From positions 310,001 through 374,000 of the IMG/VR virus record IMGVR_UViG_3300017971_000185: a stretch of DNA of 64,000 bases; one strand, 5' to 3'. Of the stretch, positions 690 through 60,295 are shown in pieces. The first letter of the stretch is position 1. The number at the start of each line of letters is the position of its first letter. Both the position numbers and the translations under genes were made by a program. The notes under the pieces were generated by a model that was not told the origin of the DNA, made no database searches, and saw only the letters and a program-made list of their open reading frames with translations.

Positions 690-707
690 GTAGTGCGTCC
701 AGAACGC

Positions 708-3543: not shown

Positions 3544-3559
3544 GTGATCAGAGGTCAAC

Positions 3560-3658: not shown

Positions 3659-3691
3659 ACGCCAGGCTCAAGGACCGCGGAACGGGCGTAT

Positions 3692-3765
3692 AGGCCCGTA
3701 GCTCAGTCGGTTAGAGCGTGGGGCTCATAACCCCGTGGTCCTCGGTTCAATCCCGAGCGGGCCTA
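3692..3765 (+). tRNA. tRNA with CAT anticodon, probably tRNA-Ile2 (lysidine type)
   Basis: Cloverleaf AGGCCCG/CGGGCCT, loop CT-CAT-AA; initiator and elongator Met tRNAs are present elsewhere. Confidence 0.85.
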
Positions 3766-6691: not shown

Positions 6692-7120
6692 CTACATCTG
6701 ATGGCCCATCTGGGAGACCACGTTTTGGAACGATTGCTGGAGAAGGGCGTAGAGAATCTCCGCTGCGTTTTCCTTGATGAGCTTTTCGATGCGAATGCCC
6801 GCCATTTGCTTTCCGTCTTCCCAGAATTCCGTCCATTCCTCGGACTCCAGCATTTTCTTGATCTTCGCGCGTGCTTGTTCTTCTAGTACTGAGTGGACGA
6901 TCTGCTGGAGTAGTGGGGGTCGTTCTCTCGCCCGCCCGTACTGATCCTGTTCGGTGTGCCTGTTGAGAAAGGTGTTGATGTGCTCTTGGAGTACCTTTTC
7001 CCACATCTCATCGGGCATCAACTCTGCGAGATCGAGATGGATCTTGTCCTTGAGTTTTTGCGCGAGGGTCATTGCATCGTGGGAAGATTCGTCCTGGGGA
7101 GTGAGGCTGTGGTTTCCCAT
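6692..7120 (-). CDS. hypothetical protein
   Basis: 142-aa ORF in a run of coupled minus-strand genes. Confidence 0.55.
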   Translation of the reverse strand: MGNHSLTPQDESSHDAMTLAQKLKDKIHLDLAELMPDEMWEKVLQEHINTFLNRHTEQDQYGRARERPPLLQQIVHSVLEEQARAKIKKMLESEEWTEFWEDGKQMAGIRIEKLIKENAAEILYALLQQSFQNVVSQMGHQM

Positions 7121-20181: not shown

Positions 20182-21609
20182 ATGAAGAAGTCTCGTCACC
20201 TCTACCTCCACCCGGAGACCAATCCGGGCAAGATTGCCGCCCTGGAGGCCCTTCACGTCGAGTACGTCAGGTACGTGCGCATCTGCGTGCAGATCATGCT
20301 CGACAACCAGAGGCTCTCCCTCAAACGGTCGGAGAAGCAAGTCTTCTTCCCGAAGGCCGAGAACCTCACCAGCCAGATCCAGAAGAACGCCCGAGACCAC
20401 GCCATCCAAATCGTGAGTACGTGGGCCAAGGCCACCTACGAGCGTGCCGTCAAGAAGCACCTCACCCGAGCACACAGGTTCGGCCAACTTTCCCAGGACG
20501 AACGACACGCCCTCTGCACGGTTGGAAAGCACCTGATCTCAGTGCCTTGGAAGCACGTCACCCAGGAGACCATCGACGCCTACTGGGCACTCCTGCTCGA
20601 CCCAGAGGTCTCTGGTAACCAGCCACGGGTGTCCGAACGCATCCCGATGCGGATGTCGGAGAACACATGCACACTGGCCGACACTGACGAGGCCATCCAC
20701 GCTCCCATGTGGATCAAGATTTCCACGCTGGTCAGCCGGAAAGTCGTCTGGCTTCCGCTCGCAGGGAATCCCTACGTCAAGTCGGCCAACGACGTGTCGA
20801 AGGGAGTCCACGCAAGGAAAGACAAGCGTGGGCGCTGGAGGTTCGAGGTTGTTGAACGCAAGGAGTGGATCGTTCCCGAACTTCAACCCGATGCGCCCAG
20901 GATCGGTGTCGATGTCGGCCTGAACGTCGTGGCCGCCACCTCGGATGGCCGGACGTTCGGAGCAAGTCTCAAACCCAAGTTCGACCGCCTCTACGAGCGC
21001 GTCAGGAACCTTCGTGCGAACCGTCAACGACAGGGTTTCAAGGAGAACAGCCCTCGGCTCAACCGGCTCGAAGACAAACTCACCAGGATGGTAAAGACGA
21101 TCACCGGGGAGGTGGCCAACAGGCTCATCAAGAGCGCACCCGAAGGCACGGTTTTCGTGATCGAAGACTTGGACCTGCGTGGGTGCCGTGGTCAGAAGAG
21201 GTTCGCGTACCGGGCCCTGGCCCACAGCTTGGAGACGAAAGCGCCCACCTTGAAGGTGAATCCGGCGTACACGTCTCAGACTTGCCCTTCCTGTGGTTAC
21301 GTCTCTCGACGTAACCGATCAGGAACCGATTTCGTCTGCCGCTCATGTGGCAGGCGTTCTCATGCCGACGTGGTGGGAGGGATCAACCTGCTGAGACGTT
21401 CTCAGGACGAACAGGTTGACCTCAACGATCACCATCGAGACGTGAGGGAGTTGCTGCGAAAACGATACCGGGCCCGTAGGGCCGGGGACAGTTCCGCAGG
21501 ACTCTGCCGAAAGGCACCCGCGCCTGAACCGTCAGGCCGGAGGCTCACTACCGGAGTATCTCCCCCGAGGAGAGGACGGCACAGCCTCGAATCCGATGCT
21601 TACCTTTGA
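20182..21609 (+). CDS. tnpB: TnpB RNA-guided RuvC nuclease
   Basis: GVDVG, IEDL, PAYTSQTCPSCG, CRSCG..HADVVGGIN; catalytic D/E/D intact. Confidence 0.9.
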   Translation: MKKSRHLYLHPETNPGKIAALEALHVEYVRYVRICVQIMLDNQRLSLKRSEKQVFFPKAENLTSQIQKNARDHAIQIVSTWAKATYERAVKKHLTRAHRFGQLSQDERHALCTVGKHLISVPWKHVTQETIDAYWALLLDPEVSGNQPRVSERIPMRMSENTCTLADTDEAIHAPMWIKISTLVSRKVVWLPLAGNPYVKSANDVSKGVHARKDKRGRWRFEVVERKEWIVPELQPDAPRIGVDVGLNVVAATSDGRTFGASLKPKFDRLYERVRNLRANRQRQGFKENSPRLNRLEDKLTRMVKTITGEVANRLIKSAPEGTVFVIEDLDLRGCRGQKRFAYRALAHSLETKAPTLKVNPAYTSQTCPSCGYVSRRNRSGTDFVCRSCGRRSHADVVGGINLLRRSQDEQVDLNDHHRDVRELLRKRYRARRAGDSSAGLCRKAPAPEPSGRRLTTGVSPPRRGRHSLESDAYL

Positions 21610-24610: not shown

Positions 24611-24696
24611 TGGTCGGTATGCAAGAGGTTAAAGCAAGCAGTCTGTAAAACTGCCGCGTTCGCGCTTCGTGGGTTCAAATCCCTCCCGGCCAGCCA
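24611..24696 (+). tRNA. tRNA-Tyr(GTA)
   Basis: Type II cloverleaf, loop CT-GTA-AA; unusual T1-A72 and G73. Confidence 0.88.
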
Positions 24697-24722
24697 GATT
24701 CGGAGTAGAAAGGAGAAGAAAC

Positions 24723-25898
24723 ATGACACAGAAGCAGCACATCAACGTAGGAACCATCGGACACGTGGACCACGGGAAGACCACCCTCACGGCGGCCATC
24801 ACGATGGTCATGGCAGCGATCAACGGAGGCGAGATCAAGACCTTCGATCAGATCGACAAGGCGCCCGAGGAGCGTGAGCGAGGAATCACAATCAACACGG
24901 CGCACGTCGAGTACGAGTCGGAGACTCGCAACTACGCGCACATCGACTGCCCAGGCCACGCCGACTACATCAAGAACATGATCGTCGGTGCGTCCCAGAT
25001 GGACGGCGCGGTACTGCTTGTGGACGCTTCTCAGGGGCCGCAGCACCAGACGCGTGAGCACGTTCTCCTGGCGAAACAGGTGGGCGTCTCGCACATGGTG
25101 GTGTTCATCAACAAGGTGGATATTGCAGATCCCGAGATGCTGGAGCTTGTAGAGATGGAGGTTCAAGATGCTCTTGCCCAGATGGGCTTCGAGGACACTC
25201 CGTTTATTCGGGGCTCCGCGCTCAAGGCACTGGAGGCCGCGAGCGAGGGGAAGATGGACGATCCCGAGATCGAGCCAGTCAAGGCGCTCATCGCCGCGAT
25301 GGACGAGCACCTTCCGGTGCCCAAGCGAGATCGGGAGAGTCCGTTTCTCATGCCCATCGAGAATGTCCACACGATTCCAGGCAGGGGCACGGTCGTGACA
25401 GGTCGTGTGGAGAGGGGCATTCTCACCAAGGGGCAGACGGTGGAGATCGTGGGTCGGACGGACGGGAAGCCCCTGGCTGCGGTCGTCACGGGAATCCAAG
25501 CGTTCCACAAGGACATCCCCGAGGCGGCGGCGGGTCTCAACATCGGCATGCTCCTACGTGGCATCGATCGGGATGAAGTCCTGCGTGGTCAGGTAGCAGT
25601 TGCTCCTGGCTCCTTGCTTCCTCACGAGAAAGGCAAGGCCGAGATCTTCACACTCACAGCCAAGGAGGGTGGTCGTCACACTTCGTTCTCTGGCGGATAC
25701 AGGCCACAATTCTACTTTGGCGCCACTGACGTGACTGCGGCAGTCGTGCCGGAGGATGGGAAAGTCGTCGAGCCTGGCGATCGGGCCACGGTGGACTTTG
25801 AGCTAGTGAGTCCGGTTGCTTGCGAGCCCGGCATGAGGTTCGCCATCCGCGAGGGTGGCAAGACCGTAGGTGCTGGGATGGTCACGGAGGTAGTCTAA
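24723..25898 (+). CDS. tuf: elongation factor Tu
   Basis: [50 protein letters not shown]; SD AAGGAG. Confidence 0.97.
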
Positions 25899-26969: not shown

Positions 26970-28268
26970 ATGAGAGCGAGGAAGAAACTACGCGCAGCGC
27001 GAGCGCGAGCGCATTGGGAGAGGGTTTCCCAGGCCCGAGCGGAGCAGCGGGAGAAGTCTCGCGTGGAAACAGCAAAACGTGATACTGCCATTCGCAAGGC
27101 TTTCGAAACTAAGTCAGATCGCGCGAAGGAGCTTCTCCTCAAGCACGACATTCTGGGTGAGTTTGGTGCGGCGCTTCTCAAGAAGGCTCCGAAGCTGGCG
27201 GACGAGCGGTACGCTTTTGGTCTTCGGTTTCTCAAGGCGCGTCAGCAATCGTGGGAACGTCCTCTGGAGGACTGGAAGCCCAAGGGGAAGGCCGCCGACA
27301 CGCAGTTCCGATCGTTGGTACGGCATCTCATCGTGAAGTACTCGGTGCCGCAGTTTCTCTACTCCGTCTTCTGGGACGACACTGACGGGTTGCGGCATCG
27401 GGGGTCGTTTTTGTTTTACTATCTCGCTCAGGGAGGTAGCCTGCGAAAGGCAGTCAAGCCGGACTTCTCCTATGAGCTTCGGGGTGAGTGGGTCCATGCG
27501 TATCGGCCGTTGTTGCCCGTGCCGCTCACGAAGCGGATGTGTCACACGTTCACGCAAAGCACGAGCGAGCACACGTTGGTGTCGGCTGTGCGTCATGCGC
27601 AGATCGAAGCGTTCGGCGGCGGCCAGCGGGTTGCGGAGCGAGTGTGCGCGACGCACCTAGGGCGAGATCTGGCTGGGGGGTCGTTGGCAGAGGAGTTTTG
27701 GCAGTCGGTTCTCCAGTGGGTGTGTAACCAGACGATGCTGGACCCGGCGCGGATCGGGAACATCGTGGATTGGGTTCGGCACAGGCGGATGGAGGATGCA
27801 AACACATTCTCCATGAAGGGCCGTACTGCCGTCTCTGTGCTGCGTGAAGTCGAGCGATGGCACACGGACCTGGCTGCGCAACGAGACGCTCTGAAGGGCA
27901 TCTACGAGTCCTCAGGCATCAAGCCCTATCGTGGCGTGCGCAAGGTCAGGCTGCCGACAGGAGCAGATCACAAGGAGATCTGGACCATCACCGAGATCTT
28001 GAACGGTAAGGAGTTGCGCGAAGAGGGACGAGCCCACCGCCACTGTGTGGTGAGCTATGCGCGGAGCATCGAGGATGGCGGAACGTCGATCTGGAGTCTT
28101 CAAGTAGATGGCGTGCGCAGGGTGACGATCGAGGTCAACAATCGCACGCGACAGATCGTACAAGCAGCCGGAAAGTTCAATCGCCGTGCGACTCCGGTTG
28201 AGAAGAAAACCATCGATCAGTGGGTAGCCAAGAACGGGCTTGCCAAGAACAAATGGCTGCGGTGGTAG
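26970..28268 (+). CDS. PcfJ-domain protein
   Basis: FSMKGRT..WH, ELREEGRAHRHCVVSY, TIEV..IVQA.GKFN. Confidence 0.85.
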   Translation: MRARKKLRAARARAHWERVSQARAEQREKSRVETAKRDTAIRKAFETKSDRAKELLLKHDILGEFGAALLKKAPKLADERYAFGLRFLKARQQSWERPLEDWKPKGKAADTQFRSLVRHLIVKYSVPQFLYSVFWDDTDGLRHRGSFLFYYLAQGGSLRKAVKPDFSYELRGEWVHAYRPLLPVPLTKRMCHTFTQSTSEHTLVSAVRHAQIEAFGGGQRVAERVCATHLGRDLAGGSLAEEFWQSVLQWVCNQTMLDPARIGNIVDWVRHRRMEDANTFSMKGRTAVSVLREVERWHTDLAAQRDALKGIYESSGIKPYRGVRKVRLPTGADHKEIWTITEILNGKELREEGRAHRHCVVSYARSIEDGGTSIWSLQVDGVRRVTIEVNNRTRQIVQAAGKFNRRATPVEKKTIDQWVAKNGLAKNKWLRW

Positions 28269-30626: not shown

Positions 30627-31029
30627 GTGGATTGCTTGGAAGGATACCAGCCGCCGCGCGCCAGCGTCTTGAGCCGTTCCTCACGGATGGGTTTGCAGAG
30701 CCAGTGGTCGCACTCGCGCTTTTGGTGCGAACGGCACCCGAAGATCTGGTGAAGGTGCTCCTCGATGTCGGGATACTGTCGAGTCTTGTCGCCCTCGCTC
30801 ACGCGAATGGCAAGGGCAGTCTCGATGTCCCCGTCGCGGAGGCACTGGATGATGTCGGAGATGCAAGAACGCCCGCCACCGTGAAACTCATCCATTCGCT
30901 GTAGCTCAGCGATTTGCTCCTCGGAGACGGGATATCTTGGCTTGTGCATCGTGCTTTTCAGAGAATGGAGAGCGCCCCGGTCCTCCCGAAAACTGAAGCG
31001 AGAGGACCGGGGCAGGAGATGACCACCCT

Positions 31030-31854
31030 CTAACCCTTGCCCTGCAACGTCGCCATCGAGGTTTCGTTGATCAGGGCGAAACACTCGTCGGGATCCTTGC
31101 CGCCAAGGTCCGCCTTCTTGACTTGCGGCACGGGCTTCAGAATCTCCATGATGGCCTGGATCTTCTCGGCAAGCTCACCGTCCGCCTCGCACTCCTCCGC
31201 GATGCCGGGGAGAGCCTCCATGATGCCATCCTTGGCCGTGACCTTGGGACGGAAGATCTGCCCCACGTGCTCGGAGGCTCCGTCCTTGACCTTGACCTTG
31301 GAGAGATCGGCGCCGCACTGGCTGCAAAACTTCACGTTGCCCATCTTGGTGTCGCACTTGGGGCACATCTTGTGGCCGCCAACGAGATTCTGGATGGCTT
31401 CCTGAAGGTCATCCATGTAGCCCAGAGTCTTCACGGCGTCCATGTCGATCTCGATGCCGGAAGTCTCGATGTACTCGGAGAGATCGGCTCCGATCATCTC
31501 CAGCGCCTCTTGCTTCTCGGCCGTGACCGTGATCCGCCGAGTCATGGTGTACTGGAAGGTGCTCTCGTTGCCGCTGCAATTGCACATGTCGGGGCGCTTG
31601 CCCGTCTCTGCAAACTGCTCGCACCACCACTGGAGCAAGTGAGCCTTGACGCGCTTCTCGGCAAGCTCACCCTTCTTCTTGAGATCGTCCTTGATCACCT
31701 TGTACGCCATCGCAATGTCAGCGACTTGGCGTAGCTCCTTGGGAAGATCAACTTCCGCGCGGACCTTGGCGCTCTTGCCCTTGGATTTGGTCTGGGCTGC
31801 CTTTCCTCCGAAGAGGCCATCGACGGCGGCAGCGGTAGCTTTCTTCTTTGCCAT
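31030..31854 (-). CDS. hypothetical protein with a double zinc ribbon
   Basis: CPKC..FCSQCG; SD GAGGAG; phage promoter motif upstream. Confidence 0.65.
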   Translation of the reverse strand: MAKKKATAAAVDGLFGGKAAQTKSKGKSAKVRAEVDLPKELRQVADIAMAYKVIKDDLKKKGELAEKRVKAHLLQWWCEQFAETGKRPDMCNCSGNESTFQYTMTRRITVTAEKQEALEMIGADLSEYIETSGIEIDMDAVKTLGYMDDLQEAIQNLVGGHKMCPKCDTKMGNVKFCSQCGADLSKVKVKDGASEHVGQIFRPKVTAKDGIMEALPGIAEECEADGELAEKIQAIMEILKPVPQVKKADLGGKDPDECFALINETSMATLQGKG

Positions 31855-32405
31855 GTGGTCTTTTCTCCTCTAGAGGCTCTACGCGAGAATGGCCCGATAG
31901 TATACTTTTGGGGGTAAGGTACTTGAAAAGATTGGGGTTTTTCGAGCGCTTTGCTGACGCTCGATCCTTTTGGCGTAGGATAGGACACATGGCCGGTGGA
32001 GGAATCCCAGTCCAGTATCTCATTCCCGAGCGCTACGTGGAGACCAAGGTTTGCCGCTGCGCTGACCATCCCGACGCTCGCGCTTCCTTATTTGAGATTG
32101 CCTTCCGTGTCGCGTGTCCTGTGTGCGGCAAACCAATGGAGCGGATCTCCAAGTGGATTGATGCCTGGACCTTAACTCTGGAGCCTGGTTGGACCGGAGA
32201 CCCGCACCCTCCGAAGGGTGCCGTCTCTATTAAAGGAAGCTGAGCCCGTGGCTCGCACTACCGCCGGTAGTGTGGGGCATGTCGGCAAACAGCGATCACG
32301 TGGTGGGATTGGTACAACGCCAACCAGGCCAGCTATCGGTGGGAGGTCATCAAGGAGGCGGAGTTTCCCGCAAACATGCGCGCGCGAGCGTGATCCAATT
32401 TCTGC

Positions 32406-32434
32406 TTGACTTCCAGCAGGAAGAGGCGTACACC
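32406..32434 (+). promoter_or_regulatory. sigma70-like promoter of the Thr/Asp/Val tRNA operon
   Basis: TTGACT-N17-TACACC. Confidence 0.6.
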
Positions 32435-32482
32435 CGTTCTAGTCGCTCCCCTTGGCAGGACAGCGACGGAAACATTCACGCC

Positions 32483-32578
32483 ATGACGAAACGCACCACA
32501 ACAACAGCTATGCTCAGTGCCCGAGTGGCCCTGCATGGCTTTGTACGTCCAAATATGGACGATACGACCCCGTGTTGA
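32483..32578 (+). CDS. leader peptide MTKRTTTTAMLSARVALHGFVRPNMDDTTPC
   Basis: 7 Thr codons (ACG, ACC, ACA) plus GAC/GAT and GTA/GTG. Confidence 0.75.
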   Translation: MTKRTTTTAMLSARVALHGFVRPNMDDTTPC

Positions 32579-32656
32579 GCGTTTCCCCGGCGTGAACCAA
32601 GACAAAGAGACAAAGCGCCGGGGGCCGCCGGTACGGGCAGGGCTGCCTAGCCGAAC

Positions 32657-32728
32657 GCTAGCGTAGCTCAACGGTAGAGCAGAGCACTTGTAATGCTCAG
32701 GTTGTCGGTTCAAATCCGACCGCTAGCT
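32657..32728 (+). tRNA. tRNA-Thr(TGT)
   Basis: Cloverleaf. Confidence 0.93.
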
Positions 32729-32741
32729 CAGAAAGGAGAAC

Positions 32742-32814
32742 GCCGCTGAAGCACAACAGGTCGTGCGTCTGATTCGTAATCAGGAGGTAGAGGGTTCGAG
32801 TCCCTCCGGCGGCT
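32742..32814 (+). tRNA. tRNA-Thr(CGT)
   Basis: Cloverleaf. Confidence 0.9.
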
Positions 32815-32826
32815 CAAGTTGAAATT

Positions 32827-32899
32827 GCCGATGTAGCTAAGTGGGAAGGCGCCGCCTTGGTACGGCGGAGATTCGTGGGTTCGATTCCCACCATCGGCT
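32827..32899 (+). tRNA. tRNA-Thr(GGT)
   Basis: Cloverleaf. Confidence 0.92.
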
Positions 32900-32901
32900 C
32901 T

Positions 32902-33049
32902 GGGAGACACAGGATCTCGTTTCGAGGTCACAAGCACGGTAAGACGCAGCATTCATAACGCTGAGACTGTGGGTTCAATCCCCACCCCCGCTTTCATGGC
33001 GGGGTAGTCAAATCGCAAGAACACCTGACACACTCTCCTGTGTCCTCCC
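32902..33049 (+). ncRNA. Y-like RNA: tRNA mimic opened in the D loop, acceptor stem closed, CACAAGC/CACTC module
   Basis: Outer stem GGGAGACACAGGA/TCCTGTGTCCTCCC; order 3' D strand, anticodon arm (CAT), T arm, CCCCGC-loop-GCGGGG, 5' D strand. Confidence 0.75.
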
Positions 33050-33094
33050 GACCCTTCCAGACTTCAACCCGCAACCCGAAAGGAGGACAATCTG

Positions 33095-33220
33095 ATGCCT
33101 GACGATGATGACGATGACGATGATCGCTTGCCCGCGTTGGTGAAGTCTGGTCTATCACGCTTGGTTGTCAGCCAAGAGGTCATGGGTTCAAATCCCATAC
33201 GCGGGGCTGGAGGTCCGTAA
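33095..33220 (+). CDS. leader peptide MPDDDDDDDDRL..., reading through tRNA-Asp
   Basis: SD AAGGAGG; 8 consecutive GAC/GAT codons ending 6 nt before tRNA-Asp. Confidence 0.8.
   Translation: MPDDDDDDDDRLPALVKSGLSRLVVSQEVMGSNPIRGAGGP
33131..33206 (+). tRNA. tRNA-Asp(GTC)
   Basis: Cloverleaf, loop TT-GTC-AG, G73. Confidence 0.9.
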
Positions 33221-33284
33221 CTCAGTTGGTCAGAGTGCCGCCCTTACAAGACGGAAGTCGCCGGTTCAACTCCGGCCGGGCCTA
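33211..33284 (+). tRNA. tRNA-Val(TAC)
   Basis: Cloverleaf, loop CT-TAC-AA. Confidence 0.88.
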
Positions 33285-33325
33285 CAAAGGAAGGTTTTGG
33301 AGTATATACAGGAAGGAGCGAAACC

Positions 33326-33865
33326 ATGAACGGAGAAGCATTTGCATTTTCCGACGAATCGCGCAAAGCTCAGTTTGGCGCGACTAAAGTCTGTTCTAGG
33401 TGTCGTAGGGAGCTTCCTGTTGCCGACTTTTCGTATGCGAGCCGTGTAAAGCTCTATGCCTGGTGTCGCGACTGCGCACGGACTTATCAGCGGGAAGTCT
33501 ATCGGACGTTTGAGGGGCAGATGAAGCATCGGGTTCGTGCGGCGCGAGGAAGGGCTCAGCGATTTGGTTTAGATTTCGATCTTGCCGTTCAGGATCTTCT
33601 TGAGTTGTGGGACGAACAGGACGGGAAGTGTGCAATTTCAGGATTGCCCATGGTCATCGATAGCGAAGAGGAGAAAGGGAAGCAAGCGTTTCGTCCGTCC
33701 GTTGACCGCATCGTTCCGAAACGCGGATACGTTCGGGGGAACATTCGGCTGGTGACGACTATCGTAAACTTCGGGATCAACAAGTGGGGTCTCGATCCGT
33801 TTCTTGCCATGTGCGAAGGTGTTGTTCAAACCATAGGCGAAAGGAAGGCATACCATGACTGTTGA
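33326..33865 (+). CDS. HNH-like endonuclease
   Basis: CSRC..CRDC; GKCAISG..PSVDRI....GY..GNIRLV..VN. Confidence 0.75.
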   Translation: MNGEAFAFSDESRKAQFGATKVCSRCRRELPVADFSYASRVKLYAWCRDCARTYQREVYRTFEGQMKHRVRAARGRAQRFGLDFDLAVQDLLELWDEQDGKCAISGLPMVIDSEEEKGKQAFRPSVDRIVPKRGYVRGNIRLVTTIVNFGINKWGLDPFLAMCEGVVQTIGERKAYHDC

Positions 33866-35747
33866 AAACCTGGGGCCTGCTGAAAAGATCATCCAAGCTC
33901 TTTTGACGCACACGGACCATCTCTACCACAACCGACCGGGAATCGTGGTTGCCGACCGGCGTACCACGACTGGCGTGCGGTGGGATCCTGTCACGTGGAA
34001 GGCAGGCGAGAACGGTGAGCGTACCGTCTACCGTTTGGTGAAGGCGGGACGTAAGCAGCGTCGTGTCGAGATCGGCACGATGAACGGCGAGAACCGCAAG
34101 ATCATGAAGGACGGAGCCGAGGTAGGCGAGTACCGTCCGAGCGGCTTGTACCCCGAAGTCGCCATTTGGTTCTACAAGCAAGTTGCCGAAGTGTGGAAGC
34201 TGGACAACGAGTTTGCCGCACGTTGGGCATCGTTCGCGTTCCGTCAGGACCACCGCGATCTCAAGGTCGTTCTGGCCGCCTTCCTCTTGGTCCAGTCGCG
34301 TAAGGGCGATCCCGTCATGGACGGCATGGTCCGTCTGTTCGCGGATGAGGACTACAGGGACGTGGGCGAGGCGATGATCTTGCTCCAAGAGAAGGGCAAG
34401 GATCTCAACCCGAAGCTGTTGCTCCGCATCTGGGAGGTTCTCTCGTTGCCGGAGATCGCGGCTGTCAACCGCGAGCTTGGTTTCGGCAAGTCGGCAAAGC
34501 GTCCATTCCTGGGTCGTTGGAGCAGGGCGGTCGAGAAGTGGCTCCGCTACCGTGAAGAGAACCCGAAGATGCTGGAGGGTCTCGTCAAGGCCGGATTCAG
34601 AACCACGGTGATGACGCTTGCCCGGAAGATCGGCTACAAGCCCACGACTGATCGGTTCTTCGAAGTCCTGCGCTGGAAGCAGAAGCAGGCCGAAGATGGC
34701 CGTCGTGAGATGGCGATTGGCAAGGAAGTCAAGGCGGCCGAGTCTTGGGCGGATCTCGATGAAATGTCGATCTGCGAGATCATCGAGAAGACCAAGCCGA
34801 ATTGGAAGCGGATCGTTGGTTTGCTTCCTTCCGAGGTTGGCGTGACCCGTGCAATCATGGCTGCGGCCATCGAGGCAGGCTCTCTGTCGGACAAGGACAT
34901 CATCATCCTGACGCCGACGTTGGAGGAGCTTGGGCTGCTCAAGGTCCAAGAGATCAAGGAACGTCTCGACTCGGCCCTGGCTCGGGCGAACGACATGCGT
35001 GCGGCCAACATCGCTCGCAACGTCCGTGACAAGGAGACCAAGGAGACGCTGGAGGCGGGTGCCGACAAGGCCGCTCAGAAGGTGGTCGAGGAAGTCGCAC
35101 GCGACATCACCATCGACTTCATCGTTGACATTTCGGCTTCGATGGAAGGCGCCCTGGATGCGGCCAAGCCGCTCATCGCCAAGTTTCTCCAGGCCCTTCC
35201 GGCTGATTACGTCAATGTTGCCGTGTTCAACACGGCAGGCCGTGAGGTCAAGGTCAAGCACAACTCGACCAAGGGCGTCGAGGCCGCTTTCCGCGGCATC
35301 AAGGCCGGAGGAGGCACTGACTACGGTGCGGGTGTGCGGGCAGTCCAGAAGCACGCGACCCCGGAAGGCCACGATCGCATCATGGTCTTCATTGGGGATG
35401 AGGAAGCACGGCCGTTCGATGAGGCTGTGAGGGTGTCGGGTCTCAACCCGGTTGCCTTCGGATTCCTCAAGACGGTTCCCTTCGGAGGAGCCGCAGCGTG
35501 GCGTTATCGGCACTACGGGCCGGACGGCAACATCGCAGTGCGGGAGACGGCTGCTCGTCTCAACATCCCATGCTTCATGATCGATGACCGCACTTTCGAG
35601 GACCCCTACGCAATCACTCGCACTCTCCAGGCTTTGATTGCGGCGACTCCGGTTGGGGAAGTGACTCAGGCTCGTCCGCGTCCGCGCGTGACGCTCGTTG
35701 ATCAGATTCTCAACACTGAGTTGCTTGCTAAGCCCGCATGGGCATGA
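33855..35747 (+). CDS. Ro60/TROVE-like protein with a C-terminal vWA domain
   Basis: Long helical N-terminal region, then MIDAS motifs VDISASM, GGTD and IGDE; TROVE assignment inferred from architecture and context. Confidence 0.65.
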   Translation: MTVENLGPAEKIIQALLTHTDHLYHNRPGIVVADRRTTTGVRWDPVTWKAGENGERTVYRLVKAGRKQRRVEIGTMNGENRKIMKDGAEVGEYRPSGLYPEVAIWFYKQVAEVWKLDNEFAARWASFAFRQDHRDLKVVLAAFLLVQSRKGDPVMDGMVRLFADEDYRDVGEAMILLQEKGKDLNPKLLLRIWEVLSLPEIAAVNRELGFGKSAKRPFLGRWSRAVEKWLRYREENPKMLEGLVKAGFRTTVMTLARKIGYKPTTDRFFEVLRWKQKQAEDGRREMAIGKEVKAAESWADLDEMSICEIIEKTKPNWKRIVGLLPSEVGVTRAIMAAAIEAGSLSDKDIIILTPTLEELGLLKVQEIKERLDSALARANDMRAANIARNVRDKETKETLEAGADKAAQKVVEEVARDITIDFIVDISASMEGALDAAKPLIAKFLQALPADYVNVAVFNTAGREVKVKHNSTKGVEAAFRGIKAGGGTDYGAGVRAVQKHATPEGHDRIMVFIGDEEARPFDEAVRVSGLNPVAFGFLKTVPFGGAAAWRYRHYGPDGNIAVRETAARLNIPCFMIDDRTFEDPYAITRTLQALIAATPVGEVTQARPRPRVTLVDQILNTELLAKPAWA

Positions 35748-35754
35748 GGTCGTC

Positions 35755-36684
35755 ATGGGTTGGAGGGATCTACTTTCGACAGGGGAAGAGAATGTAACTC
35801 TTCCCTGGACCGGTGGTGGGTCCCTCCACTCGGCCTCGCGGGTATTCAAGCTGGACAAGCGACCCCGTGAGTTTGGCTGGTACACCTTCCAGATCAACGG
35901 GACCAAGGCCAACGAGCCCAAGCCAGCAGAAGCCGATCCCGATTTGCTCAAGCACACGGTCGTCGGTTACCTCGTTGGAGATCGTCTAGTACCCGACGAT
36001 ACCCGGATCGATCCCGACCCTGGGAAAATCGTCAACTATTCCGAGAAAGTGTACATTCTTTCCGAGGAATTGGAACGTTTCTCTCGCATTCGTGCGGGAA
36101 GGGTGTATCCTGAGGGTCCGCTCATTTTCCGAGAGCAGGTTTTTCCTCTCGGACCGGAAGATGAAGTAATGGACGCTTTCCTCGACAACCGAAGCGAAGT
36201 ACACAGCATCCCCGGAGTCGTTCCGGCTCTCGATGCTGCCTTTCGAATGGAGGTTTACCAACGCGATCAAGCTGAGAAACGACGCCAGGAAATCGCTCGC
36301 AAACGAGCCGAGGAAGAGGCCCGCAGGCTACAGGAGCAGCGTCGCAAGGAGCTACGCGAAAAGCTCGGAGATGGCCAAGGGCGTCGGGCCATGGCTCATC
36401 AGGGAGACTTCAAGGAAGCGGCTCAGGCAGCGCTCCAAGTGGGCGGTGCCGTGTATCTCGACCACCGCTGCATCCGCGGAGGCGAGTGGGCCGTGAAGTA
36501 TCGTGTCGATGGACACCGACTGGAGTGCGTTTGCACAACGCACATGCAGATCATCGACGCGGGCATTTGCCTGGAGGATCACCACACGGGCGAGAGAGGC
36601 GACACTTACTTCACCCTGGAGAGTTTGCCTGCGGTCATTCGACAAGCCCTCCGCGAAGACAGACTCGTGTATAGGCACGTATGA
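35755..36684 (+). CDS. putative E2-like conjugating protein
   Basis: In an operon with JAB, Ubl and E1; C-terminal IIDAGICL resembles the UBC G.ICL active-site Cys. Confidence 0.5.
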   Translation: MGWRDLLSTGEENVTLPWTGGGSLHSASRVFKLDKRPREFGWYTFQINGTKANEPKPAEADPDLLKHTVVGYLVGDRLVPDDTRIDPDPGKIVNYSEKVYILSEELERFSRIRAGRVYPEGPLIFREQVFPLGPEDEVMDAFLDNRSEVHSIPGVVPALDAAFRMEVYQRDQAEKRRQEIARKRAEEEARRLQEQRRKELREKLGDGQGRRAMAHQGDFKEAAQAALQVGGAVYLDHRCIRGGEWAVKYRVDGHRLECVCTTHMQIIDAGICLEDHHTGERGDTYFTLESLPAVIRQALREDRLVYRHV

Positions 36685-37253
36685 TGGACTTCGACATCAA
36701 AGCTGTTGGTACTGATCTTCTTCTCGTTGGGGGCGTCTGGGCAGGCGACCACAGCACGTACATCTGTGTGTTTCCCGAATTCCACGGGATTCCCGAGGAC
36801 ATCCACGTGCTCAGCATGTCCGGCGATGAGTGGAAGAAGTTGATCAGGCAGTCCGATCTCGTAGAGAAGGAAGTGCTGGAAAAGGCCGAGGACGGGAAAC
36901 TGATCAAGGCCGTTGCGAGGAAGTGTCAGCGCAGCATCGATCAGAACGTCTCCTGGGCGGTCTACAGGCGAGACGAGTTTCGTTGTCGGTACTGCGGCAA
37001 CGACAAGGTTCCGCTCACCGTCGATCATCTCGTTTTGTGGGAGGAGTGCGGCCCATCAATTGAGGACAACTTGGTTGCTTGCTGCCGTCGTTGCAATAAG
37101 ACGCGCGGCAACATGCAGTACGCGGATTGGCTCAAGCATCCGTACTACCGGAAGGTGTCCCAAAACCTGACTGCGCTGACCAGGACCGACAACGAAGAGC
37201 TAGTCGAAACCCTCGATGCGATTCCACGCGTGATTAAGAAGAGGAAGCGATGA
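36681..37253 (+). CDS. HNH endonuclease
   Basis: RDEFRCRYCG..LTVDHL..NLVACCRRCN. Confidence 0.85.
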   Translation: MMDFDIKAVGTDLLLVGGVWAGDHSTYICVFPEFHGIPEDIHVLSMSGDEWKKLIRQSDLVEKEVLEKAEDGKLIKAVARKCQRSIDQNVSWAVYRRDEFRCRYCGNDKVPLTVDHLVLWEECGPSIEDNLVACCRRCNKTRGNMQYADWLKHPYYRKVSQNLTALTRTDNEELVETLDAIPRVIKKRKR

Positions 37254-37883: not shown

Positions 37884-38156
37884 TGCTGGGAATCCTTTAT
37901 TGGTTGTTCGGCTTCGCCACAGCTTGTGTGATTCTATGGCCGTTGCGTCGCAAGAGGACGTGGAACGAGAAGGATGGCTGGTGTGGCGACCCGGCTTGTC
38001 AGGTATGCGTGCGTCCGTCAGGGGCGCGGTGGGGGTCCGAGTGACGATTGAGGGAATCGCAGAATGGGCGCATGAGTGGCGCGCATGGCTAGCTCTTGCG
38101 TTCCTGGCAACGGTTCTCTTCCTCTGGGACCGAAGGATCCACAAGTGGAGGAAGCG

Positions 38157-38729
38157 ATGAAGATCACGATCATCGGAGCGGGAGCACTCGGGTCGCACTT
38201 GGTGCAGGCTCTACGGAACGAGGACGTGACCCTCAAGGTCGTGGATCACGACAGGGTCGAGATGCGCAACGTTGCGTCTCAGTTTCACTTCAAGCAGAGC
38301 GTGAGCAAGAAGAAGACCGACTCGCTCAAGCAGGCCATGCAATTCTGCTACGGCCGCAAGATTGAGGTTGTGGGGAACAAACTCACATCCAACAACTGCG
38401 AGCAACTCCTGAGCGGGGCAGATCTCTTGGTGGACTGTCTGGACAACGGAGAGGCTCGTAGGCTCGTCCAGGGCTTTGCCCGGTCCAAGAACGTCCCCTG
38501 TCTCCACGGGGCTCTGGCGGCCGATGGGGGCTTTGGGCGGGTCATCTGGAGCGCCGATTTCGTGATCGATGAGGAGGATGTCGCGGGAGCCGCTACCTGC
38601 GAGGGCGGCGAATTCCTGCCATTCATCGGAATCGTCGCGTTCTACATGGCTTACGCCGTCCAGCGGTTCGTCAAGGACAGCCGGATGACGGGCTACTCCA
38701 TCTCTCCAGCGGGGGTCGAAAAAATCTGA
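38157..38729 (+). CDS. ThiF/E1-like adenylyltransferase
   Basis: IIGAGALGS, DHDRVE.RN..SQ, DCLDN..AR; candidate catalytic Cys in ATCE. Confidence 0.9.
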   Translation: MKITIIGAGALGSHLVQALRNEDVTLKVVDHDRVEMRNVASQFHFKQSVSKKKTDSLKQAMQFCYGRKIEVVGNKLTSNNCEQLLSGADLLVDCLDNGEARRLVQGFARSKNVPCLHGALAADGGFGRVIWSADFVIDEEDVAGAATCEGGEFLPFIGIVAFYMAYAVQRFVKDSRMTGYSISPAGVEKI

Positions 38730-38845: not shown

Positions 38846-38973
38846 GCCGGACATGACCCGTGGGGGTCACCCGATTTTCCATCGGTAACGATCCGACAGC
38901 ACCACTCGCCCCTCAAGAGGGGCTCACGGATGATGTCCACAAGCACTGCCAGGTTCGACTCCTGGGTCCGGCG
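38846..38973 (+). ncRNA. tRNA mimic type A1 (open acceptor, module inserted in the variable loop)
   Basis: GCCGGAC/GTCCGGC; D, anticodon and T arms; GACA..CACTC-hairpin-..TGTC-CACAAGC insert. Confidence 0.75.
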
Positions 38974-38974
38974 C

Positions 38975-39104
38975 TGAAGCAACCAACCAGACAGGGCTCA
39001 CACGCAAAGTAGCTCATTGGGTAGAGCATCGGTATCGCAAACCGAGGGTAGCTGGTTCAAGTCCAGTCCTTGCAACAAACAAGCTCTTCAACTCGGTTGC
39101 TTCA
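38975..39104 (+). ncRNA. Y-like RNA type B1 (whole tRNA mimic nested inside the module)
   Basis: Outer stem TGAAGCAACC/GGTTGCTTCA; loop ATCGCAA. Confidence 0.75.
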
Positions 39105-39144: not shown

Positions 39145-39272
39145 GGCGGACCAGGCCCGGTGGGGGCCAACCGACTTACACTCGGCAACGATCCGACACC
39201 AACACTCGCCTCTTTCGAGGCTCCTCGGTTGAATGTCCACAAGCTAGCCTGGTTCGATTCCAGGGTCCGCCT
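39145..39272 (+). ncRNA. tRNA mimic type A2
   Basis: Paralog of A1 with compensatory changes (GGCGGAC/GTCCGCC; CCTGG/CCAGG). Confidence 0.75.
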
Positions 39273-39274
39273 CT

Positions 39275-39404
39275 GAAGCGACCAAACCCGAAAGGGCTCA
39301 CAAGCAAAGAAGCTCATTTGGCTGAGCGTCTCGATCATAACGAGAAGGTAGCTGGTTCAACTCCAGTCCTTGCACTCTGTTCAGCCCCTCAACTCGGTCG
39401 CTTC
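39275..39404 (+). ncRNA. Y-like RNA type B2
   Basis: Paralog of B1; GAAGCGACC/GGTCGCTTC; loop ATCATAA. Confidence 0.75.
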
Positions 39405-40087: not shown

Positions 40088-40156
40088 ATGGACGACGACA
40101 TTAGCGACATTATCCGACATGGGTTCGTAGCTCAGTTGGTTAGAGCGCTGCCCTGA
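40088..40156 (+). CDS. leader peptide MDDDISDIIRHGFVAQLVRALP, reading into tRNA-Ile
   Basis: ATT..ATT ATC ending 6 nt before tRNA-Ile(GAT); stop lies in the anticodon loop. Confidence 0.6.
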   Translation: MDDDISDIIRHGFVAQLVRALP

Positions 40157-40194
40157 TAAGGCAGAGGTCGCTGGTTCAACTCCAGCCGAGCCTA
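40121..40194 (+). tRNA. tRNA-Ile(GAT)
   Basis: Cloverleaf. Confidence 0.93.
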
Positions 40195-40342
40195 CAGATT
40201 TCCGCAGCCAACAACTGCGGGCCAACACGACCGATAGCGGAAGGAATCCAGCAGCGCAGGGGACGACGATTGATATGTAGAATCGGGCCCTGTTTGACAA
40301 TCTCCGCCGAACCAAGTGCTTGGAACAGAAAGTCCCCTATGA

Positions 40343-40419
<77 letters not shown>

Positions 40420-40485
40420 AGGAGATCCATGACGCGCAAGATCACATACGATGAGCGAATGCCAAGGGCAGATCTACAGATCTGC

Positions 40486-40562
40486 ACCGGGATAGCTCAG
40501 GTGGTCAGAGCGGGGGTCTCATAATCCCCAGGTCGCCGGTTCAACTCCGGCTCCCGGTACCA
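40486..40562 (+). tRNA. elongator tRNA-Met(CAT)
   Basis: Cloverleaf with CCA. Confidence 0.88.
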
Positions 40563-40737: not shown

Positions 40738-41114
<377 letters not shown>

Positions 41115-43947: not shown

Positions 43948-44580
43948 CTGTTTTTGAAAGAGAGCTTTGAGTGCTGGAGAAGGTTCCTTCGGCGGACTGT
44001 TGAGGATCTCCAGCAGCCGTTTCATCGCGGGCTCGGGAAGCCGGATGATGGGGTCGATGACCCACTTCTCGCTCTCGTCTCGCTCACTCGACATCGCTTA
44101 GAATCTTACCACCCATAGAGCCTGGTTTTAGCGATCTCGATCGCTCGCTGAAGCGTTAAGCCGTCTCCTTGTTCTTTGCGGCCTCCGGCGTCGGTTAGCT
44201 CGACTTGCCAATGCCCGCACTCTTGCCAGATCGTGACTTGGGTACGGCAGCTAGGTCGATAGCTCGGGTTCATCTGGCCCTTGCGCCTGGCATCCTCGCG
44301 GACCGAACGGCAGAAGAACAGATGGAGTGTGTCTTCGATGGTCGGCGTCAGCCTTCCGATTGGGTCGATGCGCATGTGCATGTCCGGTGGTGAAGCAAGT
44401 GGCGTACCGGACGTGATTTCGCGGGCTTAGGTCGCTCAGCGTCGGTTGTGGCGGGGGATTGCCGCCTGCCTGTCGGCAAATTCACCGACAGGGTAGCCAA
44501 TTGGAGAGGGCTCGGGTATAGTCTGGAGCGTGGCGGTGACGCCACGTTCTCACCAACGGCCAAAGCCAAAGGGTGGGTCA

Positions 44581-45780
44581 ATGACCAAGAGCCGCAAACA
44601 GCGACAAGCTGATCAGCTTGGAATGCCGATTGGGACTGCGCGAAGCAAGCTCCAACGGAAGATCATCTGGGACCTTCTGGTTCGCCAGGGGGAAAACCAA
44701 TGCGCTCGCTGCGACGATTGGATCAACTCAGCCGAGGACTTGGCCATCACCCACATCGAGCCCTGGCTCGATAACGACCCAGAGTTGTTCTGGGATCACA
44801 ACAACGTCGCCTTCATGCACCCGACCTGTGCCGAGGAGTATGCATCAGAGAGGGAGGCTGCACGGCGGCAGAAAGAGCGCGACATGGAAATCGTAAGAGT
44901 AGGAATCATCAACGAGCGAGGAGAATGGCTCCCAGGTTGCTTCCACGATGGGAAGGTCTACGTCGTCGGCAAACATGGTAGCCGGTACAGCATCCACTTG
45001 CGCAATCTCACCGGAGAGCGCATCGAGGTCGTGCTCACGGTCGATGGGCGCGATGTGATCACGGGAGAGGAAGGCTCCACGAAGAATCGTGGATACATCC
45101 TTCACGCTTTCGAGACATGCACGATCGAGGGCTGGAGAACGAGCGACGAAACCGTTGCGGCCTTCCGTTTCGGAGCAGACAAGGACAAGGCGTACTCGAC
45201 ACAGCTAGGAACCGGAGCCCATCTCGGGGTGATCGGTGTGGCTGTCTTTCAGGAGTACTTCAGGCCGCAGTCTTCGTTCACCATCCTGCGGAGTTGCGGA
45301 TACTCCAGCGACTCCATACCTGTCGGCGCGAGCGCGGAGAGCGTGAAGATTTCGGCTTCGACAGAGACGAGTGGCGGAGCAACCTATTCTGTTTCGTGCA
45401 ACAACGTCAGCGACGAACCGATGTTGGGGTTCTCCGACGAGTCACGCAGGGCGTCACGCAGGGAGCGAGAGGAGCGGGCTCAGGCCCCGCTCCGTCGTCG
45501 CAGTATGAGGCGGAAACGGTTGGTCGAGGAACAGGAGCCTCGCGAGGAAGTCAAGCTCGGAACCAAGTTTGGAGAGGAGCGTCGGTCGAAGGTAGGCAAG
45601 ACGACTTTCACACGTCGGACTACGGAGGCTGCCTGGACGCTCACCATCGAGTACGACACGTTCAAGAACCTCAAGAGACGGGGCATTCCGATCAAGCGGA
45701 CGCAGCCGAAGAAGGAAGCGCCCACACCGAGTGCCTTCCCTGCCGACAACGAGTACTGCAAGGCTCCGCCGCGGAGGTAG
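44581..45780 (+). CDS. fusion of a degenerate HNH-like domain with an uncharacterised beta-rich domain
   Basis: CARC..HIEPW..NVAFMH; VLTVDGRDVITG..IEGWRTS..AAFRF..GVIGVAVF. Confidence 0.65.
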   Translation: MTKSRKQRQADQLGMPIGTARSKLQRKIIWDLLVRQGENQCARCDDWINSAEDLAITHIEPWLDNDPELFWDHNNVAFMHPTCAEEYASEREAARRQKERDMEIVRVGIINERGEWLPGCFHDGKVYVVGKHGSRYSIHLRNLTGERIEVVLTVDGRDVITGEEGSTKNRGYILHAFETCTIEGWRTSDETVAAFRFGADKDKAYSTQLGTGAHLGVIGVAVFQEYFRPQSSFTILRSCGYSSDSIPVGASAESVKISASTETSGGATYSVSCNNVSDEPMLGFSDESRRASRREREERAQAPLRRRSMRRKRLVEEQEPREEVKLGTKFGEERRSKVGKTTFTRRTTEAAWTLTIEYDTFKNLKRRGIPIKRTQPKKEAPTPSAFPADNEYCKAPPRR

Positions 45781-48705: not shown

Positions 48706-49506
48706 ATGGGCAGCAAAAGCTCACTTGGGGACCGCATGAAGCGATACGAGCAAGTGCCGCGCACATCGCTCACGCCCCGGACTCCCATGATTATCCGCAT
48801 CGATGGGCGGGCGTTTCACACGTACACGAAGAACATGCAGAAGCCGTGGGACCCGGTTCTGCGGGATGCTCTCACGGCCGCTGCACAGGAGCTTCTGCGC
48901 GAGATTGCTGGAGCGAAGCTGGCTTACCTCCAGTCGGACGAGATCTCTGTGCTCGTGACCGACTACGACAAGCTCACGTCGCAAGCGTGGTTCGACAAGG
49001 TGGCCCAGAAGATCTGCTCCGTGTCGGCGTCTATCACCACAGCCGTCTTCAACCGCGGCGTACTGGAGACTTTCCTTGGGCGCTACGATGTTCGCGAGTT
49101 GAAGGGGGCTGACGGCAGTCTCGACACAGCGATGCTTCCTCCTCCGGCACATTTCGACAGCCGATGTTTCGTGGTCCCGCGTGAGGATGTCACCAACTAC
49201 TTCGTGTGGCGCCAGCAGGACAGCACGCGAAACTCCGTCTCGGCTCTCGCGCAATCGCACTTCTCACATGAGGAGCTACAAGGCAAGAAGTGGGGTCAGA
49301 TGCAGGAGCTACTGTTCCAGGAGAAGGAGATCAACTGGAACGACTGCGAGACCTGGCAGAAGCGTGGTTGGTGTGTCTTGCGGAGCACTGTGGAGATCGA
49401 ACCGGGCAAGATGCGAGTGATCGTTGAGCCGGACCTGGAGGTCCCTGTTTTCTCCAACTATCGCGCGTACATCGAGAAGTATCTTCATTTGGACACGGAC
49501 GCCTAG
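48706..49506 (+). CDS. thg1: tRNA(His) guanylyltransferase Thg1-like protein
   Basis: IIRIDGRAFHTYT, YLQSDEIS, FDSR, YFVWRQQD..RNS. Confidence 0.92.
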   Translation: MGSKSSLGDRMKRYEQVPRTSLTPRTPMIIRIDGRAFHTYTKNMQKPWDPVLRDALTAAAQELLREIAGAKLAYLQSDEISVLVTDYDKLTSQAWFDKVAQKICSVSASITTAVFNRGVLETFLGRYDVRELKGADGSLDTAMLPPPAHFDSRCFVVPREDVTNYFVWRQQDSTRNSVSALAQSHFSHEELQGKKWGQMQELLFQEKEINWNDCETWQKRGWCVLRSTVEIEPGKMRVIVEPDLEVPVFSNYRAYIEKYLHLDTDA

Positions 49507-58100: not shown

Positions 58101-58172
58101 GCGTGTGTAGCTCAGTTGGCAGAGCATCAGCTTCCATGCTGAGGGTCGCGGGTTCGATCCCCGCCACATGCT
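58101..58172 (+). tRNA. tRNA-Gly-type body with a 6-nt anticodon loop (probably a defective Gly(CCC))
   Basis: TCAGC-TTCCAT-GCTGA. Confidence 0.65.
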
Positions 58173-58191
58173 CGAAAGGAAGAACATGAAC

Positions 58192-59719: not shown

Positions 59720-60034
59720 CAATATTTCGTCACCATCGAAAAGGACAGAAGGAACAACATGTAATCATCAACAAGGAGGTCGTCATCATGCGTACCGTAT
59801 ATGCAGACCTGAACATGCGTAACCGAACCCGTGACTGGAAGATCCCGCTCGGAGGCAATACCGTTTCCCTGCGTGCGATTGCAAAGCCGGGCACGGTGGT
59901 CCGTGTGACTGACGACGATCTAGAGGTCGAGGCTATGGTCGAGATCCGCAACGGGATGCTCGTTGCGGACGCCCGCTGGAACACGCTGGCGTATGTCCAC
60001 TAGACCAGGCCCGGCTAAGCAAGGAGGAAAGCGT

Positions 60035-60067
60035 ATGGAACACGAACGATGGCGAGGCTGTCCGTAA
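60035..60067 (+). CDS. leader peptide MEHERWRGCP
   Basis: SD AAGGAGG; TGG and TGT codons; stop lies in the loop of a GCTGTCC/GGACAGC hairpin, just before tRNA-Trp and tRNA-Cys. Confidence 0.7.
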   Translation: MEHERWRGCP

Positions 60068-60075
60068 GGACAGCT

Positions 60076-60148
60076 AGGGCGTTAGCTCAGTTGGGAGAGC
60101 GACGGACTCCAAATCCGTAGGTCGCGGGTTCGATCCCTGCACGCCCTG
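60076..60148 (+). tRNA. tRNA-Trp(CCA)
   Basis: Cloverleaf. Confidence 0.93.
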
Positions 60149-60152
60149 CCGC

Positions 60153-60224
60153 GGCTCCGTAGCCAAGTGGGAAGGTAGCGCTCTGCAAAAGCGCCATTCG
60201 TCGGTTCGACTCCGACCGGAGCCT
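60153..60224 (+). tRNA. tRNA-Cys(GCA)
   Basis: Cloverleaf, U73. Confidence 0.93.
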
Positions 60225-60295
60225 CCGCGATGAAACAACCGAACGACAACTAGCCCCCAGGGGTCTCGCTGCTCCTGGGCAACAGGAGCAAGACG

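Follow-up and report, generated by a model that had tools for sequence, protein, structure and literature searches.

Part of a 497-kb IMG/VR contig from an uncultivated huge phage, the 64,000-nucleotide stretch of DNA analyzed here (the window) carries 44 predicted tRNA genes (ARAGORN), one of which, tRNA-Asp(GTC), is preceded by a short open reading frame that starts with a run of aspartate codons and reads into the tRNA itself. On balance, we favor the explanation that this mini-ORF is a translated leader that senses the tRNA it precedes and controls it by negative feedback through tRNA folding. The components of this reading differ in strength. Judged from its sequence, the Asp leader is very probably a functional translated element and probably a sensor of its cognate tRNA, and the sign and mechanism of its effect on tRNA yield, deduced from the geometry of the locus, are put forward tentatively.

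All elements of the Asp leader lie on the plus strand. A Shine-Dalgarno (SD) sequence, AAGGAGG (33080-33086), is followed after an 8-nt spacer by the ATG start codon (33095-33097), by CCT as codon 2, and by the proposed sensing segment, the Asp run GAC GAT GAT GAC GAT GAC GAT GAT (33101-33124; five GAT and three GAC), so that the encoded N terminus reads MPDDDDDDDD. Two further codons, CGC TTG (33125-33130), separate the last Asp codon from position +1 of tRNA-Asp(GTC) (33131-33207; ARAGORN; Rfam tRNA, 61.6 bits), the proposed regulated product. The frame runs through this tRNA and ends at a TAA (33218-33220) within the next gene of the array, tRNA-Val(TAC) (33211-33285; ARAGORN and Rfam). The entire mini-ORF (33095-33220) thus comprises 41 codons plus the stop, with just the first 12 codons outside the tRNAs. 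Direct reading, the ORF list, ARAGORN and Rfam confirmed in every detail the SD, the ATG CCT start, the eight GAC/GAT codons and the entry into tRNA-Asp two codons later that a preliminary description of this DNA had reported. That description had also mentioned the stop inside tRNA-Val; its position was correct, but the stops of related leaders lie anywhere from +19 to +297 relative to tRNA +1, indicating that the 3' end of the mini-ORF, and with it the stop in tRNA-Val, is incidental.

Upstream of the SD, base composition and folding delineated a C-rich, G-poor, unstructured stretch (33027-33079). Across 12 variants of the leader, the 50 nt 5' of the SD contained on average 39% C and 18% G, compared to 26.5 and 30%, respectively, upstream of all tRNAs. 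This tract could be a standby region for ribosomes or a Rho-loading (rut-like) tract.

The Asp run is the longest homo-amino-acid codon run adjoining any tRNA of the 64-kb window. Tandem Repeats Finder (TRF) recognized in it just 2 to 2.8 copies of a 6- or 9-nt unit (a GATGAC repeat), showing that it is not a long microsatellite. GAY runs are also present inside genes of the window, and strong SD-like motifs are fairly frequent, with 38 on its plus strand; the window alone therefore does not decide whether the arrangement arose by chance. Comparison with relatives settled this question, since an SD, an in-frame ATG and an Asp-rich run recur in front of tRNA-Asp in 14 distinct leader variants from related huge-phage contigs (the window, L003, L004, L017, L040, L045, L047, L051, L052, L055, L056, L067, L084 and L085).

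As an anchor for collecting relatives we used the adjacent 630-aa vWA-domain protein (33855-35747), by which 32 loci on viral contigs were retrieved with no requirement for Asp codons. These loci contained ten distinct tRNA-Asp genes, including that of the window (L001), and four of the ten had a leader, namely, the window, L003 (AAGGAGG, ATG, MADDDDDDRL before the tRNA), L004 (MNIENDDCDDVDDTY before tRNA-Asp) and L017 (AAGGAGG, ATG, MDAPDDCDDRT). The leaderless tRNA-Asp genes were second tandem copies, lay 7 nt past another tRNA, or belonged to the more distant phages L007, L024, L025 and L029. Since tRNA-Asp genes of the wider clade can thus be leaderless, as are most tRNAs of the window, the device is optional. 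Retrieval via the tRNA-Asp body alone yielded four phages, and all four had a leader.

We also scanned for Asp-rich runs at most 30 nt from a tRNA-Asp, using a pattern that forces D-D-x-D-D. Viral contigs contained 6 matching stretches and metagenomes 28; genome contigs gave 2, neither of them convincing. The viral matches came from this clade only and added L040 (MEDDDDADDSY), while the metagenomes, in which about 20 of the 28 stretches share the synteny Thr-Thr-Thr-leader-Asp-(Asp)-Val, added MPDDDDDDDDRF, MNDDNDDDADDTY, MNDKNDDCDDVDDIY, MNDNESDDADDSDDTY, MNDNSDSDDVDDTY, MNTADDADDADDTY and MNDVDSDDADDSDDTY. Two leaders missed by the pattern, L084 (MDDDDDVHDPN) and L085 (MDSDDSDDRDLY), were found via the tRNA body. 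In a control scan for Asp runs before tRNAs with other anticodons, no mini-ORF with SD and ATG appeared; the matches were acidic C termini of ordinary proteins beside tRNA-Thr, one start-less case at a tRNA-Asn and two non-tRNA sequences. Over the whole viral collection scanned, the arrangement was thus confined to this clade and to tRNA-Asp.

Several candidates were not counted as members: L046, L050 and L060 (EDDSDD) as well as L044 have no start codon, and L057, on a 1.1-kb contig, has an ATG without an SD. With two further proteins of the window as anchors (44530-45780 and 26970-28268), only the same phage was retrieved and no relatives were added. No close relative emerged when 31000-35000 was compared by BLAST with deposited phage genomes, the best match being Virus Rctr197k, with 69% nucleotide identity in the vWA gene only.

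According to the preliminary description, absence of the GAY run from relatives would make it a simple repeat. The run is kept in the 14 variants, some of which were found without selecting for Asp codons. In 14 of 14, an AAAGGAG-type SD lies 6 to 9 nt 5' of the ATG, the ATG is in frame and forms an invariant column of the alignment, and the last Asp codon is a GAT placed two codons before tRNA +1, at positions -9 to -7 (or -8 to -6); eight of these variants came from the D-D-x-D-D pattern, so that their invariance is partly by construction, and all 14 are phylogenetically related rather than independent trials. The leaders are 9 to 16 codons long and contain 5 to 8 Asp codons, their length varies by whole codons, and the third positions of the Asp codons alternate between C and T, while the tRNA bodies and the remaining nucleotides diverge. 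Between the leaders of the window and L055, for example, we counted five synonymous changes and one nonsynonymous change, and the tRNA bodies of the two differ strongly. By these features, the Asp leader carries the signature of a translated frame.

Leaders of this kind were also found in front of other tRNAs. When we surveyed 194 tRNAs whose spacers measured 44 nt or more, the cognate residues encoded by the last 14 upstream codons summed to 320, compared to 279 ± 13 under label permutation (p = 0.0006), an excess owed to conserved leader families. When strict criteria for SD and ATG were applied, 23 of the 36 candidates belonged to the Asp (13), Ile (6) and Lys (4) families, and in those 23 the cognate residue was the commonest or tied for the commonest. 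The Ile leader of the window, MDDDISDIIRH (40088-40120, plus strand), abuts tRNA-Ile(GAT) (40121-40195), with its last Ile codon at -9 to -7. Other phages carry MEKEDSDISDIIY, MEDSDSDIGPIIY, MGAPDSEIAIPS and six further versions, giving ten distinct versions with that of the window, among them MDDSDISDITY in L067; an 18-nt stretch is identical between the window and L004. A His leader, MLTTAHTDDEPHHHTY (40738-40786, plus strand), starts 5 nt past the stop of a 56-aa ORF and abuts tRNA-His(GTG) (40787-40864), and the L003 phage harbors ..RHTDADEAPHHHLM before its tRNA-His. A scan for P-H-H-H before tRNA-His found only these two phages, making the His family a narrow one. Lys leaders precede tRNA-Lys(UUU) in five phages, e.g., MKRKNKPGKAGPKR and, with its stop codon, MSKKGEKKRTAP. 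The parallel existence of Ile, His and Lys leaders strengthens the link between a leader and its cognate tRNA. The Lys leaders are basic, and the Ile and His leaders start D/E-rich; since Asp and Glu thus abound also outside the Asp family, acidity may have a role of its own.

A poly-Thr family was rejected. Directly before tRNA-Thr, L040 has an (ACC)n repeat (6823-6876, minus strand) and L004 a (CACCAA)n repeat (approximately 3306-3354), microsatellites of uncertain frame that encode poly-Thr in one frame; read from the sole ATG of L040, the run falls in the Pro frame, and a start codon is missing from L004. Two other mini-ORFs of the window adjoin tRNAs. At 60021-60067, AAGGAGG is followed after 7 nt by an ATG and a 10-codon ORF (MEHERWRGCP, then a stop) that ends 8 nt before the pair tRNA-Trp (60076-60150) and tRNA-Cys (60153-60226). 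It contains exactly one Trp and one Cys codon, both rare residues, and may be a leader stopping ahead of the tRNA pair; none of the fetched loci has an ortholog. In addition, an SD (AAGGAG) shares nucleotides with the encoded CCA terminus of a tRNA-Met that looks like an initiator (40343-40419; 1:72 mismatch and three G-C pairs in the anticodon stem), and the ATG at 40429 opens MTRKITYDERMPRADLQICT (region 40420-40485), which runs into the next tRNA-Met (40486-40562). This tRNA-abutting peptide is kept in L048, L067 and L072 (..TTYSERMPE.SDM..) and shows no obvious enrichment of the cognate residue.

Codon choice within the leaders pointed in the same direction. Asp leaders used GAT and GAC at 52:28 (65% GAT), compared to 99:151 in the genes of the window (Fisher p of about 1e-4), a count in which the retrieval pattern forces one GAT per leader and the variants are interrelated. 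The nine Ile leaders counted used ATT and ATC at 19:5 (79% ATT; genes, 33:156), the His leaders CAT and CAC at 6:2 (75% CAT; genes, 28:75), and the Lys leaders before the tRNA with the UUU anticodon AAA and AAG at 12:6 (67% AAA; genes, 40:253). All four families hence favor the codon that is rare in genes, the reference being the genes of the window and not the relatives' own usage. The favored codons are wobble read or isoacceptor specific, as would be expected of a sensor of tRNA supply.

From this arrangement we infer translation, stalling and the direction of the effect on tRNA yield as follows. Ribosomes would load at the strong SD and decode the 5 to 8 Asp codons, mostly wobble-read GAT. 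If charged tRNA-Asp is scarce, the ribosome would wait within the Asp run, where it would also cover the SD and the ATG and thereby prevent reloading. A bacterial ribosome covers roughly 12 to 15 nt 3' of the P-site codon. Whichever Asp codon of the run occupies the A site, the front of the ribosome would extend no farther than the first bases of the tRNA, and when that codon is an early one, RNase P would have 11 nt or more of free 5' leader; under scarcity, the pre-tRNA could thus fold and be cut out by RNase P. If tRNA-Asp is plentiful, ribosomes would enter the tRNA body and unwind the acceptor stem and the D arm, so that maturation would be delayed or prevented, the acceptor stem starting to unwind one translocation beyond the last GAT. 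The net outcome would be an isotype-specific negative feedback on the phage tRNA supply. Lys leaders end at tRNA positions 8 to 10 and Ile leaders in the D loop, so that translating them would likewise invade the 5' part of the tRNA. As cleavage by RNase P is irreversible, passage of ribosomes may only delay maturation and leave the yield as it is. More broadly, it is conceivable, and for the moment speculative, that huge phages run an isotype-specific tRNA homeostat, in which the leader measures the charged level of a tRNA, even at the level of the codon that its anticodon alone reads, or reads worst, and a shortage releases the phage's own tRNA copy from its precursor. Such a shortage could be caused by host anticodon nucleases or by tRNA depletion defenses hitting Asp, His or Lys tRNAs.

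The acidity of the encoded peptide bears on this scheme. No stronger trigger of intrinsic ribosome destabilization is known than an N-terminal poly-Asp chain (10.1101/2021.02.02.429294). Because such chains abort elongation by themselves, many ribosomes may abort within the run whatever the level of tRNA-Asp, with less run-through into the tRNA, and, to judge from the acid-rich starts of the Ile and His leaders, this property may be put to use. A leader that is translated but does not sense could even rely on it entirely: ribosome loading would protect the long, otherwise untranslated tRNA precursor, e.g., from Rho or RNases, and the acidic run would eject the ribosomes before they reach the tRNA. 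MP-D8 is an extreme N-terminal D/E-rich sequence of the kind that aborts elongation (10.1101/2021.02.02.429294), the D/E-rich starts recur in the Ile and His leaders, and the C-rich, G-poor upstream tract resembles rut sites. Ejection does not explain, however, why Ile, His and Lys codons are enriched before their own tRNAs or why rare codons are preferred; moreover, the Lys leaders are basic, not acidic, and the interrupted Asp codons of the L004 type (DDCDDVDD) would be weaker in destabilization. We therefore regard a nonsensing leader as unlikely, although it is the strongest competitor of the sensing leader.

The upstream tract also raises the question of a Rho-dependent transcription attenuator, in which a ribosome stalled on the Asp codons would block Rho loaded at the C-rich tract, so that tRNA-Asp and the array are transcribed, while behind a fast ribosome Rho would terminate. 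The leader-peptide systems tnaC and mgtL act via Rho, the tract lies 5' of the SD in 12 variants, and the terminator scan found no terminator-like site on the plus strand, leaving no intrinsic terminator. Known rut sites, however, lie downstream of the leader ORF or overlap it rather than preceding the SD, the structured tRNA that follows immediately is a poor substrate for Rho-mediated release, and the ATG of L003 lies only about 40 nt past the preceding tRNA. Attenuation by Rho thus appears slightly less likely still than a leader that merely ejects ribosomes. The spacer of L003 is likewise too short for a promoter of its own, and we assume that the leader is cotranscribed with the upstream tRNAs; a promoter scan found no sigma-70-like site.

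If the repeats were read as RNA rather than by ribosomes, they might serve as T-box-like specifier codons, their pairing partner being either the anticodon of free tRNA-Asp or the downstream pre-tRNA. The complementarity between the repeated triplets and the anticodon and the 18-nt identity between the Ile leaders of the window and L004 would suit this idea. Against it, an Rfam cmscan of 32300-33700 (E ≤ 1) returned tRNA-type matches only and no T-box, the leader alone (z of 0.24) and the leader with tRNA-Asp (z of +1.03) folded no better than shuffled sequences, and RNAalifold identified no conserved pair (0) across the leader alignment. A predicted pairing of 33057-33067 with the D-arm region of tRNA-Asp was dismissed as chance, since inspection of L003 and L004 revealed no evident counterpart. 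The SD, the in-frame ATG, the whole-codon indels and the synonymous third positions all point to decoding by ribosomes, and we judge sensing at the RNA level to be highly improbable. A tmRNA or another tRNA-mRNA hybrid was rejected as well, as ARAGORN predicted no tmRNA and the ORF, with its canonical SD and ATG, is located 5' of a complete tRNA.

We attach equally little probability to a tRNA-sequestering minigene of the lambda bar type, which would deplete the host of tRNA-Asp through drop-off of peptidyl-tRNA-Asp while the phage supplies its own. The strong SD, the very short effective ORF and the hungry or abort-prone codons near the start are what such a minigene would have (PMC2490762; 10.1101/2021.02.02.429294), but phage and host tRNA-Asp would be sequestered alike, minigenes of the bar type stop early while the frame of the Asp leader stays open for 41 codons, and the fixed two-codon distance to the tRNA would be left unexplained. 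Least credible of all, and largely refuted by the comparative data, is a nonfunctional slippage repeat that has by chance an ATG and an SD in frame, since for all the short GATGAC repeat, the common SD-like motifs and the microsatellites before tRNA-Thr in L040 and L004 that have no convincing start codon, 14 divergent variants keep SD, ATG, frame, Asp content and tRNA distance, and the viral collection holds the arrangement only in this clade and only before tRNA-Asp.

The sensing leader recalls several known systems and coincides with none of them. With the attenuation leaders of trpL, hisL, pheL, leuL and thrL, and with pheM of pheST, it has in common a short SD-led ORF with clustered codons for a single amino acid upstream of a related gene, ribosome speed as the signal, and the use of sensitive or rare codons. 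Unlike these leaders, it would control a tRNA itself (tRNA-Asp, with tRNA-Val 3' of it) and not a biosynthetic operon or a synthetase, its ORF reads into the regulated RNA, and it is phage borne. It also has no terminator or antiterminator hairpins, just 6 nt lying between the Asp run and tRNA-Asp, and thus lacks the defining structural feature of classical attenuators. T-box riboswitches similarly sense a specific tRNA in a 5' leader via a codon-anticodon relation; as structured RNAs, they bind uncharged tRNA with no ribosome involved, and the genes under their control encode synthetases or transporters. The leaderless polycysteine short ORFs (sORFs) of mycobacteria are another parallel, as a homo-amino-acid tract in a tiny ORF acts as the sensor and the stalled ribosome occupies the RNA and alters the folding of its neighborhood, with no terminator involved; in that case, the stalled ribosome opens up a structure that conceals the next gene's ribosome-binding site (10.1101/834739). 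The neighboring structure of the Asp leader is, in contrast, a tRNA that needs folding for its processing, and the leader has a strong SD.

The leaders of intrinsic ribosome destabilization (mgtL, and N-terminal D/E-rich sequences, for which a D/E(-P)-rich segment among the first residues is characteristic; 10.1101/2021.02.02.429294) share with MPDDDDDDDD an N-terminal acidic run in a very short regulatory ORF, but their destabilization depends on the nascent chain and Mg2+ and not on a tRNA, and they do not account for the Lys, Ile and His sisters. Lambda bar minigenes and hungry-codon effects (PMC2490762) resemble the Asp leader in being phage-borne, SD-led mini-ORFs with an effect specific to one tRNA species; a bar minigene, however, has 2 to 8 codons and a stop, acts through drop-off of peptidyl-tRNA, and is unlinked to a tRNA gene. 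HDV-like theta ribozymes (PMC10879173) are cis elements that adjoin phage tRNA genes and have been proposed to time tRNA release, but they are self-cleaving and involve neither an ORF nor codon sensing.

Our literature search returned no account of cognate-codon leader ORFs ahead of tRNA genes. In the general view, promoters or bulk processing control the tRNA genes of bacteria and phages, and we know of no feedback loop described as specific to one tRNA species. Leader peptides are textbook sensors of charged tRNA, known to us for amino-acid and synthetase genes and not for tRNA genes. New here are the tRNA gene as the target, the fact that ORF and regulated RNA overlap, and the dispensing with a terminator, while the logic is that already known from attenuators and polycysteine sORFs. 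If the reading is true, this would be the first tRNA gene autoregulated through translation of its own precursor and a form of terminator-free attenuation in which a structured RNA folds and is processed in competition with the ribosome; phages with a large complement of tRNAs would then actively balance individual tRNAs, which would suggest a phage answer to host defenses that target tRNAs. Gene callers overlook this class of mini-ORFs because of the overlap with tRNA genes. With about 50 nt of leader plus the tRNA, the Asp leader is directly testable in a laboratory host or in a cell-free system.

The gene content around the tRNA arrays fits a phage that manages its own translation. Among the arrays are encoded a full three-domain EF-Tu (24669-25898; E = 3.6e-60), a Thg1-family tRNA-His guanylyltransferase (48706-49506), a TnpB/Cas12f-like protein (20182-21609) and a ThiF-family protein (38076-38729). 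EF-Tu and Thg1, together with at least 44 tRNAs, suggest that the phage invests heavily in translation.

Several further sequences in and around the arrays deserve mention. Between tRNA-Thr(GGT) and the Asp leader, a weak tRNA-like sequence (32933-32993) scores 27.5 bits with the Rfam tRNA model, below the gathering score, and is not called by ARAGORN; L040, L084 and L085 have a fourth tRNA-Thr in this position, and although no ortholog could be assigned, the sequence probably represents a decayed tRNA. In L004 (approximately 3430-3700) and L040 (6880-6990, minus strand), the space between the Thr cluster and the tRNA or leader after it contains a conserved element about 100 nt long, which is also present upstream of the fourth tRNA-Thr in L084 and L085. 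It includes the hairpin GCCTCG-TAGA-GCGAGGC and, after it, ..CAGGCGACCGGGCGGCCTGKGGGA.., and might act as a small RNA, a promoter or a processing signal. Two stretches of some 150 nt (38850-39002 and 39150-39302), alike in their frame translations, precede tRNA-Ala(CGC) at 39003 and tRNA-Met at 39303 and look like a duplicated upstream element. ARAGORN also reported a tRNA with an irregular 2-nt anticodon (58101-58173) and a lone tRNA-Asn(ATT) (706-781, minus strand) in the window, and a tRNA with a 4-nt anticodon (CTCG) was seen in L022; these are possibly nonstandard decoders or miscalls. Finally, two ORFs resembling HNH-type or zinc-ribbon endonucleases adjoin tRNA clusters, one (36681-37253) matching Pfam HNH (E = 1.4e-8) and the other (33326-33865) having CxxC pairs and no significant family, and both may be homing endonucleases that shuffle tRNA cassettes.
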